Shown here: positions 36,401 through 45,400 of the stretch, piece by piece | Position numbering within the stretch: the stretch's first letter is position 1 | Layout of the letters: the number at the start of each line of letters is the position of its first letter | Assembly (NCBI GenBank): GCA_965644265.1 | Contig: OZ286463.1 | Coordinates: 105,214,001-105,278,000 of the forward strand | Direction: 5' to 3' | From: Glycera tridactyla | Lineage: Eukaryota | Length of the DNA stretch: 64,000 nt | Notes under the pieces: generated by a model | What the model saw: the letters and a program-made list of their open reading frames with translations, nothing else | Told to the model about the DNA's origin: nothing | Databases searched by the model: none | Made by a program: the position numbers and the translations under genes

Positions 36401-39400
36401 CAGAGAGAGGACAGATTATGGATATTTTTAGATGTGGAATACGTTGCTCAGTAGTTCTCACTATATTTGCGATGAGATGATTATGTATAACTGATGGTCT
36501 CCCAACTAGAAACAATGCTAGTCATTGAACATAGTAAGTGGTGTGCCCTTAACACATACGGTGAGGTTAGGTATTAGCAATCACGGATACACGGTCACCT
36601 GAGAAGCAGGGGAATGCTAATCAGAACAGGTCATAAAGCAATACCTTATTCAGTCCTACGTCCTGCAACAAAAGTTGGAAGGGGAATATGACACTTGAGA
36701 GTTGAATAGATGAAGCGTAATAGTCTGATCACTTGCAAGCATTCCAGTAAGGATAGGCCTGACCAATTCACCTTCTTCGAAAAGTCAGAGTGAGTATGCT
36801 TATATTCCTGCAGTAAAGTTCGATAGATGATGGATGAGAGAGAGAGAGAGCTCAATGAATTTGGGAGGCTGATAGAGTGACATATTTTATCAATGCTTGA
36901 TTCCACTTTATCACACAGTCATGCTCTATGATATGAACAGAGACCAAGTCACCATTCAGGCAGTTACTAGATGGCAACTTAACTGAATTCGAGCAATAAA
37001 CGAGGGCTCAAATCAAAATGTCAGTCCTGTTTGGGACAAATGTGACACTTTTCAAGGAATGTTAGATTATCCTCCGCTTTGTCCGGTATTTGAAAAGTTC
37101 ACACAGTACTGTTCATTGTCAATGTTGCAGGATATCTTGCGTGAGGGTGTACATTAGATACGTCTTTTTAAGGAAGTCAACATGCCAATTGTAACTGATC
37201 ACACATTATGCATTGAATAGTCTTCATTTTGATGAGATCAGCTTTGCATTTGCAAGAGAAACATTTTCATCTTAATCAACAATATTGGTCCTAATGTCAC
37301 GTAAATGAAAGTTTATTGACCTTCTCCAAACGTCTGGGCTTGCGAGCATCAACGTTTCATGCAGCAAAAATGATAGAACGTTCTAAGGGGATGGCTATAG
37401 TGGAGGAATAGCTGAGAAAGACACTTAATCAAGATCAAATAATAAAGTATACATGTAAAACAAATTCAACCAGAATTGTCAATATACTATTTCCATAGAT
37501 AGACAATATCTTGCGAAACAAACACATACCGACAAAACAGCTTAATCTACTCCAAGCTATATCCACCTTAGAAAGGTAAAGCAAAATCTGCAACGGATTT
37601 TTCCATGAATGCTCAGCGGTTGCGTGATACAACAAAAACACGAAGACAAAAGAATTTTCAAAACACCATGAGGAACACACGCACTTTATCGCCAAGTATT
37701 CATAGCTTGAAAGAAATCCACATTACATACCCTCTTGGGTTTGCGCTAAGTAAAATCATGGCATATTGACAATTAACAATTGTATTAATGTAGTGATGAC
37801 ACTTTGGTATGACAGATAGCTGGTTCACCTATATATGGACAACTGATATAGATTCGCATGAAAATAATTCGAGGCGATTTGAATACCATATAGGTGAATG
37901 AGGACGGGTTGTCGAGTTCTACAGTTCTTTTTCATGAAATCACTTGAATGAAACTCCCACTAAGGTTGTCGCATGATTTATGCTTCTTGCAGTCGCCATT
38001 GAGTATTTTTTGCATTCGACCATTCACAATATCAATGCATATCCAAAGTGTTGTTAGATGGTTTGAATATTCTCCTACAACTGTTTCTCTCGTCAGCACC
38101 ACCATGCATTACTGAGAGAACCATGCAATTGGCATGGGATAATCATCAAAGACCCCAAAGGTACACAACTGGAAATCATGGTGGCAAAGAAGTGTCTTCA
38201 TGAGAACCACTCGGCTTCACTCGAGTGTCTCCATTACTGGAACAAATACTATTTTGGAATATATCGTATATACTTAATCTTCTGTGCTATGACAATTTCT
38301 ACAGATACCCAGAAGGGATGAGAACATGTTGAAATAATTTACCGACTCCTTACCTTCTCCAGGTCACGCTTTGAGGCGTAGTACTTGCTCCACCAATCAA
38401 GTTCAGCCATCAACTCCTTCTGTTTCTTCCTCTCCTTCTCATCTAACGTCGGTGCTGTCACCTTGCGGGTAATCTTACTCTCCTTCAGAGGAGTTCCATC
38501 CCCCGCCACAGATGGCGCCCGTGACCCGGGTCCTCTGGATGGACTATCCGGTGCTACTAGGGGCACATCGTCGGGCATGGCGATCGCAACGTGTGATGAT
38601 CTGGACTCCGGTCGTGGGGTCGTGGGTGAGGATCCCTGGTACTGGGATACCGATTTCACATCTAGTCCAGACTTCCTACTCGGCGAAGACGACGAACTTG
38701 AACGTGATTTGAGTATTGACTTTCGTCCATCGACAATGACCACGTCTGTTGAATCAATAGGTGAGATTCGGTCCACCTCTATTGCAGTCACCACGCTCTC
38801 CTCGTCCCAGCCAGATTTGGAACCGAATGTTGCGATGGATACAGAATCTTCTGAGATGACACTTTGTGCTGGTGTTGAGAATATTCTATTCATGCTGGTT
38901 CCATCACCCTGATGACTTTCGACATCATTTTCATTGATGCTGTACATACTGGGACCTACAGGCATGAGATTGTGGTTAGATACATATCCAAACTGTTTCT
39001 TCCAAAGACAATGAACATTCCAGGGAAGATTTATTGACTGTGTACTAAACCTCGATCGAAATCTATTCATTCTCCAGTATAACATTCTTGACATATATGT
39101 GGGTGTATGCACATTGCGGGTGCATTCTGGCGGGAGAGGATAGGGCGATTTCTCTCTATATTGAGATGACTGGCTATTGAAGTGCGATGCTGAATGATTC
39201 AGCCCAGCTCTGCTTAATACACTCTTTCATTCCCTCTCTTCCCCCATTCTCTCTCCCTCCCTCTCCCTCTTTCTCTCTCTCTCTCTCCCTCTCTCTCTCT
39301 TTCTCGCTCTTCATCTTCTATATCACACGCACAGACATATACAGCTGTTTTGAAGTTGGCTTAGCATGGTAATAGGTCTGCAAAGTTTATCAATCGGAAA

Positions 39401-42400: not shown

Positions 42401-45400
42401 GTAAAATCGAATCTCACATCAATATATTTGATAAGACAATTGTATTCATGTGAAGAGTATTTGTTGCGAAGTTTCCCAAATTGTTTTTGTTGGCCATGAT
42501 GGCCTTGTCATCTATAGATGTTGATGGTGATCCCATAGAGCTATATCGGATGCACCATAGCATGCTATCGCTATCAGTTGTTATTTACTCTGTGTGTATG
42601 TTGATCTGAATGTCTGGATATACATGGTTCCAAGTATTCAGACTGCACTTACATATATTTGCGTGAAGATCTGTTAAACCACCAACTCCGAAGAAAAAGA
42701 TTACTTGTATGTTTGTAATGTACATATGGAATAAAACTGAGTTACAATGCAAGTAATATCATGATGTTCCTATGCAACTTATTCGATTTTAAGCTTGTAT
42801 TAAGAGCCTGGTTGCCGTTGAAAGGCTTGATAAAGCAGCAATTTTTTTTTTCAAAGTACTTCATTAATAGATCATGGCAAATTATATCAGGCGAGAAATA
42901 TCAGCTGATCAGTGATCTTAGTTCCCTGACAAGCAGAAAGCAATATCGAGAACATGCATTCTACATACATACATACATGAAATATTCATAAGCATTTTTA
43001 GGTTGCATACGTTTCAGGGTACATCTCTCTGAATGTACTTGCATGTGGAGGTGACATGCACTACTGTTTAGCTTACATTGATTTAAAGAAGAAGCTTATG
43101 ATGAATAGCGCAATATGGGAATATATTCTAACCTCTTCCTATATCTGGGTTGGAATCTGAAGTGACAATAATCTTCGGGATATTAGGCCTGGCGGGTGGA
43201 TCAGACGATTTGTGATGCTTCTTGGAGTTATGTTGCTTCTTGTATTTGAGTCGAGGACTGGAGCCCTTCTCAGCGGAGCGTTTATTAGATTGACTCATAC
43301 CTTTAGATCGGCTGATTTGAGAGTTAGCCAAACTCTGACGAGACCCAAACAAATGGCGAAGACCAGGATCATCTGCTATTGTCAGTGACTTGCGGTTGGT
43401 GGAGGTGGTGCTTGGAGCAATGGAGACGGCATCATCATCATCAAGTCCATATAATCTTCTCAAACTGATTCCATCGCCTGATGAACTCTTTCCATCCACG
43501 TTGTCAGAAGATGGGGCCTCAAACATCAAGCGTAAACTAGTTCCATCTCCCAAAGTCACAACACTGCGTCTGTCACTCTCCTTAGCGGGGGGTATTACAT
43601 CAGCTGATGCCAGCATCCGCCGGATGCTGTAGCCATCATCAACCATCACCATACTCAATATATCACCTTCTAGAGTCTGAACTATCGGTGGATTCTCCTC
43701 GAAAAGTAGTCGCATGCTTCGACCATCATCCAAGTTCACCACACTGACTACATCAGATTCCTTGACATCTTTCCTACTTGGTTCACTTGACTCGAACAAA
43801 ACACGCAGGCTTTTACTATCGTCCATTGTCATCATGCTGACCGAGTCTGCATTGGGGCCGTTGACAACGCTGGCTGGTCTTGAGGCAAACATGTTCCTAA
43901 TACTGGTACCATCTCCTGCTTGGATGCTGGTTGTATCTGCATAGCGGCCAATGACAGTAGGTGGTCGCGATTCTCCACTACCGCTCGATGAACTAGGGAG
44001 ACTATAGTCATCCATCCCACTGATCATACTGGGAGCCTGGGAAGCGAACATCCTTCTCATACTGATTCCATCATCTGTTGTCTTGATGCTGATGATGCTA
44101 CGGACTTCGTGGTTCTGGGTGACTATGCTGGGTGCCTGCGACCGGAACATATATTGCATACTGCGCCCGTCTTCACCCAAGGACTGCATACTCGGAGATT
44201 GAGCCCGATTGAGCGAAACTGACGAACCAGCGATACCTGAAAGAGTAGGGTCATATCAGTACGAATGCATTAAATGGCAGGTGGTGATCTAGTATGTTTT
44301 TCAAACTAATATGTTGATCATGCTATCCCTTGATAGGTATCAAAATACCATACAATATGTCGGATTTTCGAAAGTACACCACTGGTGAATCACAAGCACA
44401 TTATGGCCGAAACTTTCATATGACTGATATGAAATAGAGAGGTAAATAGTTCTGTCAGAGTACCAACGTACCCGATGAAATGGTGACAACAAGAAAGATG
44501 AAGTTATAGATCTTTTCCGAATGAGTGAAACGACGGACATTCCAGCTGTCAGCTGATCATGGATGAGGTAATCGATCATAATGACAAACCAATATTGATG
44601 ATCAAGAGGAGGGATTTCAATGATTATGATCTACCGATTGCCTATCAGCAGATACCACCATGAAATATTGCTCAGACTTATGTACATTTTTTTATGTGAA
44701 TCTATGACCAACAAGAGTGTCTTCTTCAACAAAGTGATTTTGTACCTGTATGAGTCTGATGTATCATCGAAATAAAAAAGATATTCATTACCCTACCAAT
44801 ACCAAAACTTTCGATATAAAAGCGACTATATTCGATAGCGATAGCATCCTTTGCCTTTCAAATGATAAAAAGCAGCTAGAAATGATTCGACATTCATGGT
44901 AGTTAGGGTTACTTACTTCCATTGGGTACCTTGAGTAGTGATTGCTTCATCTTGCTCTTCTCAGCCTGTATCTGCTTCTGCTCCTCGCGTAGAGCCTTCT
45001 TAGCAGCATGTTTGCGTAGTTTCTCCTCCTCAGAGATCCAGATGTAGGACTGGATATTGGTGATTGTATGGACACCAACTAGAACCTCACGACCGAAGCT
45101 TCGACAGTCATAACAGCGGATGGTGATCGGAGGCCAGTAGTGCTCATCATCGGGCATTTCCTGAAAATGAGAGTAAATTCCTTAACATGCATGTGTGACG
45201 GGTGAGTTCCGCACACCCAGGTCACCATTTCTTCCCCGATCACGTTTGGTACAAACGGGCCAAATAAGGACTCCAGCAACCATTGAACCTGAAGTACCGG
45301 AGTCTGCAGTTGTTCAAGATGATTGATCTCGATATCACTGTATTTGCAGAGACTAAAATTACCTCGCAATTGAACAATGGTAAATGGTGTTATTCTAATG

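Follow-up and report, generated by a model that had tools for sequence, protein, structure and literature searches.

Several short linear motifs that dock on F-actin have been described. The Xin repeat of XIRP1 and XIRP2, with the consensus GDV(K/Q/R/S)XX(R/K/T)WLFET(Q/R/K/T)PLD, has its reported origin in the vertebrate lineage (PMC2478706). For the SFM, a published helical F-actin motif of the form VxxLxxxFE with ITPKA and Lifeact as examples, positions P1 and P8 were identified as the most conserved and were reported to be essential; SFMs arise de novo, and convergently, in disordered regions and are repeated in some proteins (PMC13364712). In MLCK, three DFRXXL motifs are located within 75 residues at a spacing of about 28 residues and bind three actin monomers, one each (PMC2196421). 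For the ferlins, the linker between the C2A and C2B domains was described as disordered and alternatively spliced, with candidate binding motifs and an optional polybasic segment (bioRxiv 10.1101/2025.03.15.643383). The present work deals with a stretch of 64,000 nucleotides from the contig OZ286463.1 of Glycera tridactyla (assembly GCA_965644265.1, positions 105,214,001 to 105,278,000), referred to as the window at this full length. Its minus strand contains a gene which, judged from its sequence, is an otoferlin-like ferlin, and in one linker of this protein a short motif is repeated many times.

In three exons, named A, B and C, 17 copies of the motif D-G-x-S-[LMI]-R-x-[ML]-F were identified on the minus strand in one open frame, with nine copies in exon A, seven in exon B and one in exon C (Table 1). 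A prediction made earlier from the DNA letters (the original prediction) had quoted 17 copies, and all of them were recovered in this frame. A loose pattern, D[GDNSP].[STDGN][MILV][RKNQ].[MILV][FYL], gave 13 matches; in 2000 shuffles that preserve the composition it gave 0.0145 on average and never more than 1, which is an enrichment of about 1000-fold. For the strict pattern, seven matches were obtained and none in the shuffles. When all six frames of the entire window were scanned with the loose pattern, no match was identified outside exons A, B and C. The conserved unit was found to extend beyond the core that had been proposed. Counted from the Phe as position 0, it comprises Ser at -14, hydrophobic residues at -13 to -10, Asp or Gly at -9, Asp at -8, Gly at -7, any residue, Ser at -5, [LMI] at -4, Arg at -3, any residue, [ML] at -1, the Phe, any residue, Ser at +2 and Pro at +5. 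The copies follow each other at a median spacing of 31 residues (range 23-105), in a chain that is rich in Ser and Thr (23-24%) and has a net charge near zero with plentiful acidic residues. Some copies are degenerate: A1 is devoid of the Arg, A6 ends in Leu, B6 lacks the Asp-Gly pair, and A9 and B7 represent a D-x-P-G-L-R variant. The last core position is Phe or Tyr in eight of the nine copies of exon A, an exon in which tryptophan is absent. A repeat remnant is present at residues ~70-85 of exon C, where the R-x-h-F part (h, hydrophobic) has been lost and the upstream half and the Asp-Gly have been retained; exon B contains a remnant similar to it.

A DNA tandem repeat or a recent expansion was considered as the origin of the array and was ruled out. 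No tandem repeat exists on the DNA level, and blastn revealed hardly any similarity between exons A and B, which implies that the array is old and has been kept on the protein level only. On that level, exon B aligns collinearly with exon A at 36% identity (E 1e-27), and both have kept the cores. The original prediction had stated that the motif is preserved in the protein while DNA and spacers diverge, and this agrees both with the comparison of exons A and B and with the orthologue described below, which retains the cores.

The assignment of the host gene is based on a combination of features. A Pfam scan of the window revealed one C2 domain at 53881-54216, another at 61834-62151 and a dsrm_Ferlin domain at 25398-25784, and a DWWSK[FY][FY]AS element is present in a chain of exons on one strand and in one frame. 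Three unusually long open reading frames (ORFs) of the minus strand are located between these Pfam ferlin domains, at 43131-44255, 40458-41888 and 38342-39226. The upstream C2 exon aligns to residues 1041-1082 of the otoferlin chain 9qe2_A (E 1e-5), and the tail of exon C aligns with residues 1474-1517 of myoferlin, including DWWSKFYAS. Canonical AG/GT splice sites were identified at all borders of exons A, B and C; these borders had been placed correctly in the original prediction, and spliced contigs use 44236, 43133 and 38955. Since exons A and B are both of phase 1-1, either can be skipped without a break of the frame.

The insert is located in the linker between the C2 domain (after C2E) and the conserved DWWSKYYAS element. 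With exons A and C, the distance from the C2 domain to this element is ~590 residues, and ~1050 residues when exon B is added. In the mouse otoferlin chain, the end of the C2 domain and the segment just before DWWSK are separated by ~75 residues in the alignment with 9qe2_A. The linker thus has 8 to 14 times the length of that of mouse otoferlin.

Evidence for expression was obtained from the contigs of four runs from two studies. The runs behave as transcriptomes, since their contigs carry minus-strand spliced joints with GT..AG ends. The joint 43133>38955, with GT..AG ends, connects exon A to exon C. For the joint 44917>44236, contigs with loose ends at the acceptor of exon A were found in all four runs, and these read into 44917-44944, the last bases of the upstream C2 exon, with the translation ...QSLLKVPNG. 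The array is therefore part of a ferlin mRNA, as had been predicted, in which exon A is joined to the C2 exon on one side and to exon C on the other. Within exon A, an alternative donor that keeps the frame (43301, context AAG/gtatga) was identified by the joint 43301>38955, which is present in X1 and in X4, with a depth of 16 in the latter run. The long and the short form of exon A both join exon C, and in run X4 the short form is the deeper contig. The highest contig depth was found for exon C.

For exon B, no joint into or out of the exon was found in the four runs. Its cover is 2-3x and intron-like, and two contigs cross its borders unspliced, one on the donor side (40416-40566) and one on the acceptor side (41823-41972). 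The share of sampled words present in the same runs was 0.22 for exon B, compared to 0.58 for exon A. An open frame of 477 codons, good splice sites and the collinear relationship to exon A with retained cores speak in favour of an exon that is not dead. Exon B is best described as a cassette exon unused in the tissues sampled, and it may be either a cassette exon confined to certain tissues or a duplicate that is silent. Since no spliced RNA was found for it, the demonstrated mRNA carries 10 copies and not 17. The predicted 17-copy ferlin array consequently stands for the 10 copies of exons A and C, and the seven copies of exon B are left without spliced RNA.

Table 1. Exons and motif copies of the ferlin linker array, in positions of the window
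Feature	Position	Strand	Remarks
Upstream ferlin C2-domain exon, end	44917..45181	-	donor after 44917, phase 1
Exon A	43133..44236	-	1104 nt, phase 1-1, 9 motif copies, expressed
Optional polybasic tail of exon A	43133..43300	-	168 nt (56 aa), removed by donor 43301
Exon B	40490..41866	-	1377 nt (459 codons), phase 1-1, 7 motif copies, exon A paralogue
Exon C	38354..38955	-	1 motif copy, degenerate remnants, then conserved ferlin element in same frame
A1 core DGRSMQYMF	44145..44171	-	
A2 core DGISMRRMF	44046..44072	-	
A3 core DGTSIRNMF	43887..43913	-	
A4 core DSKSLRVLF	43794..43820	-	
A5 core DGRSMRLLF	43701..43727	-	helix on RSMRLL in AF2 unit model
A6 core DGYSIRRML	43611..43637	-	
A7 core DGTSLRLMF	43521..43547	-	
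A8 core DGISLRRLY	43449..43475	-	
A9 core DDPGLRHLF	43347..43373	-	variant
B1 core EGESMRGLF	41490..41516	-	
B2 core DGTSINRLF	41238..41264	-	
B3 core NGTSLRIMF	41085..41111	-	
B4 core DGNDIRPMF	40995..41021	-	
B5 core DGTNLKLVF	40914..40940	-	
B6 core TTFSLRRLY	40845..40871	-	degenerate
B7 core DIPGLRRMF	40530..40556	-	variant
C1 core DGTSMNRIF	38879..38905	-	

Exons A and C are under purifying selection. In the comparison of the contigs with the window, 31 synonymous and 6 non-synonymous variants were counted in the two exons (28 and 6 in exon A, 3 synonymous in exon C), and four of the six non-synonymous variants fall within the optional polybasic tail.

A relative of the array was identified by a profile of the 17 repeat units, which was searched against 1.84 billion representative proteins, one per 50% cluster. 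At E<=0.001, exactly one protein was obtained, P0001 (E 2.5e-12, six stretches), in a search in which a full-length ferlin with the insert could hide behind a cluster representative devoid of it. P0001 was called as an ORF in prokaryote style, on a eukaryotic contig of 5 Mb from the ENA assembly ERZ26052378. This 'metagenome' assembly contains megabase eukaryotic contigs, with two haplotigs that are 99.3-99.6% identical at this locus. At the locus, a C2 exon very similar to the one of the window (...VPNGSK) has as its next exon a single giant one with about seven motif copies, for example, DGQGMRNLFGSREPS and DGVSMRRMFSTPRPS. The whole repeat region together with a DWWSKYYAT element is present in this single exon (L001, 9365-11611; L002). 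The similar C2 exon, followed by a giant motif exon that ends in the conserved element, identifies this region as the orthologous linker of another species, and its single-exon organization implies that both the division into the three exons A, B and C and the duplication took place specifically in the lineage of the window. The introns of the orthologous locus contain a dispersed repeat of ~210 bp in both orientations, with 84-92% identity between copies (L001 ~6040-6830, 11615-11845, 15720-16025, 16275-16585 and 19875-20230), one of which is located immediately after the giant exon.

On the orthologous linker, the profile scored 62.9 bits in seven stretches, compared to a maximum of 10.3 in 1000 shuffles. 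The positions kept in both species are D-8, G-7, S/G-5, M/L-4, R-3, a hydrophobic residue at -1, F0, S+2 and P+5. The Glu after the Phe, which is present in 5 of the 17 copies of the window, was found in none of the seven copies of the orthologue. In a BLAST comparison of exon A with the orthologue, E rose from 1e-9 to 0.046 once the 12-residue cores had been masked. The cores are thus conserved above the spacers, and the converse, cores no better kept than spacers, which had been named as the outcome that would speak against the motif, was not observed. The two haplotigs of the orthologue differ by five synonymous and four non-synonymous changes, numbers too small to be used.

The insert is predicted to be intrinsically disordered with a short helix at the core. 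The AlphaFold2 (AF2) model of exon A, based on a four-sequence alignment, has a mean pLDDT of 33 and a pTM of 0.17, with no residue above a pLDDT of 70. Short helices or hairpins are drawn at the motif sites only, with hairpins at A1, A5 and A7. For a single unit, modelled with the alignment of the 17 repeats, a helix of six residues on RSMRLL was obtained with a mean pLDDT of 79, which is weak evidence for a peptide so short. For the conserved hydrophobic positions -4, -1 and 0, a common helix face is a better fit than a strand.

Searches for described relatives were made in several collections. Pfam gave nothing meaningful, either on the exons or on the single units, so that the motif is unrecognised by family libraries, as the original prediction had it. 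A word-indexed protein search with exon A identified no relative among proteins of 0.55-1.75 times its length, a range uninformative on full-length ferlins. The ESM Atlas contained no usable match, the 262 pattern matches in JGI metagenome contigs included no relatives, and the profile search of the PDB gave only matches with E>1. Literature searches that covered ferlin linkers as well as the ferlins of invertebrates and of annelids gave no description of the insert. For known linear-motif classes (ELM), patterns were compared with the 17 copies, and none of them fits the conserved positions of most copies. The PP1 motif RVxF fits five and the PP2A-B56 motif LxxIxE fits three of them, and both fit none of the seven copies of the orthologue; LxxLL, acidic di-Leu, LIR, clathrin box, beta-TrCP degron, 14-3-3, AP2, NPF and LD fit one copy at most. 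An ALPS-like membrane sensor was ruled out by inspection, the helix being short and flanked by Pro with many acidic residues, and an EF-hand-like DxDxDG loop was ruled out by its spacing, which does not fit.

The linker contains an array of a new short motif that is restricted to one lineage, expressed and under selection, and that probably acts in multivalent docking. This reading, which was also that of the original prediction, is favoured by a non-random motif that is present in a ferlin mRNA and is conserved at its cores in the orthologue. According to it, exons A, B and C encode a long, Ser-rich insertion, predicted to be disordered, in a linker of the otoferlin-like ferlin, with a unit of the form S-h-h..[DG]-D-G-x-S-[LMI]-R-x-[ML]-F-x-S..P about every 30 residues. 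When bound, the core would most likely form an amphipathic helix of two turns, in which the Ser would serve as N-cap, and one face would be made up of the hydrophobic positions -4, -1 and 0, with the Arg at -3 beside them. Many weak, identical contacts could then add up to hold the ferlin and its vesicle on a repetitive or oligomeric partner. The valency of the array is set by the old exon duplication and by alternative splicing. The array is comparable to the C2A-C2B linker of the ferlins in being disordered, as predicted here, and alternatively spliced, with candidate binding motifs and an optional polybasic segment. It differs in its location after C2E and before DWWSKYYAS, and in consisting of tandem copies of one new motif instead of single AP2 or SH3 sites.

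Several points weigh against this interpretation. Exon B gave no spliced joint in the four runs. These runs were available as contigs, from which isoform proportions are unreadable. The array is present in two species, so the depth of conservation is shallow. The loss of significance in the BLAST comparison with masked cores comes from a biased test, since masked residues break alignments. The helix is derived from the AF2 model of a 30-residue peptide, which is weak evidence, and the model of the whole exon presents some of the copies as hairpins.

The best surviving alternative is that the array is specifically an F-actin tether of convergent origin, in which each copy would dock on a single actin subunit after the model of Xin, the SFM or the DFRXXL motif of MLCK. 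With Xin, the array has in common a short core that recurs every few tens of residues along a long unstructured region, and an equivalent placement of Asp, Arg and Phe, the Phe being preceded by [LM] and sometimes followed by Glu. D-8, R/K-3 and F0 of the Xin skeleton are each present in 14 of the 17 copies, but Gly at -9 is found in 5, Leu at -1 in 7 and the Glu in 5. The Val of Xin at -7 is replaced by Gly, and neither this Val nor the Trp at -2 was found in any copy. For the SFM, P4 is hydrophobic ([LMI]) in all 17 copies and P8 is Phe or Tyr in 16. At P1, one of the two essential positions, a hydrophobic residue (Val, Ile or Leu) was found in one copy only, with Gly in 13, and the Glu of P9 is not conserved (5/17 in the window, 0/7 in the orthologue); by these comparisons the array fails as a member of the SFM class. 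For the unit, a short helix is predicted within a disordered region, of six residues, or about 6-8, compared to 21 in ITPKA. The actin-binding peptide of ITPKA, LRLLFEARAASA, was the only actin-related match in the PDB and aligned to lRrlFeSrapsa of the profile, but with E 1.9, which is at chance level. With MLCK, the array shares an h-R-x-x-h core (12 of 17 copies) and the distance between copies, the median period of 31 residues being close to three DFRXXL motifs per 75 residues. The exact DFRXXL pattern does not occur in the copies, however; in place of the Asp before the hydrophobic residue (Asp at -5 in 1 of 17) the array has Ser, and it contains an additional Asp-Gly upstream. That SFMs emerge de novo in disordered regions and are repeated in some proteins would suit a convergent origin. 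Considering both sides, a specific role as F-actin tether is rather unlikely. F-actin is the leading candidate for the partner, but only on the grounds of formal resemblance and the period of about 30 residues. In its most extended form, the proposal would make the insert a multivalent F-actin tether built into a ferlin, a third and independently evolved linear binder of the Xin/SFM type with one copy per actin subunit, which would couple Ca2+-triggered vesicle fusion to cortical or presynaptic actin and whose valency would be tuned by exon duplication and by splicing of exon B and of the polybasic tail. This extended form is unlikely.

A second alternative is self-association of the sticker-and-spacer type, in which the Arg, Phe and Met residues of the cores would cluster or condense ferlin vesicles with no dedicated partner. 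The regular spacing of Arg and aromatic core positions in a disordered, Ser/Thr-rich chain and the increase in copy number through exon duplication are in line with this. However, an invariant Asp-Gly, a Ser at -5 and the positions S+2 and P+5 are not required of generic stickers; that all of these were kept across species points to stereospecific recognition. With the net charge near zero and the abundance of acidic residues also against it, self-association is an improbable explanation.

The array could also be a folded tandem-repeat domain, for example, of stacked beta-hairpins around an Asp-Gly turn. Asp-Gly is a favoured hairpin turn, it is preceded by the hydrophobic residues at -13 to -10, and the hairpins in the AF2 model of exon A are located at three of the copies. 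The confidence of that same model, the irregular spacing of 23-105 residues, the helical model of the single unit and the fit of positions -4, -1 and 0 to a helix and not to a strand make such a domain very improbable.

That the array is a true homologue of the vertebrate Xin actin-binding repeat, a kinship at which the original prediction had hinted, is hardly credible: a few copies show the G-D...R..F-E skeleton, but the Pfam Xin family (PF08043), the hidden Markov model that had been suggested as a check, gave no match to any of the three exons at E<=1 or to any single one of the 17 units at E<=10, the copies agree with the consensus at 2-7 of its 14 specified positions, the hallmark V, W and TxPLD are missing (P+4 in 2/17, L+5 in 0/17, D+6 in 3/17), and Xin is reported from the vertebrate lineage whereas the array was found in a ferlin of two related invertebrate genomes only.

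Two further observations were made in the window: runs of N are present at 12823-13021 and 29953-30372, and the intron that separates exon B from exon C contains a (TC)n microsatellite at 39248-39311.

The C2 domains of the ferlins are now understood structurally, while their linkers have mostly been treated as passive. In the gene described here, one ferlin linker has grown 8- to 14-fold in length and is occupied by a putative recognition element, repeated and under selection, the valency of which can be changed by splicing. The reach of this finding is limited to the two related invertebrate genomes in which the array was found, with a functional role that is proposed from sequence. If a partner were found, the array would show how a vesicle bearing a ferlin is held before fusion, and would add a new class of linear motif.

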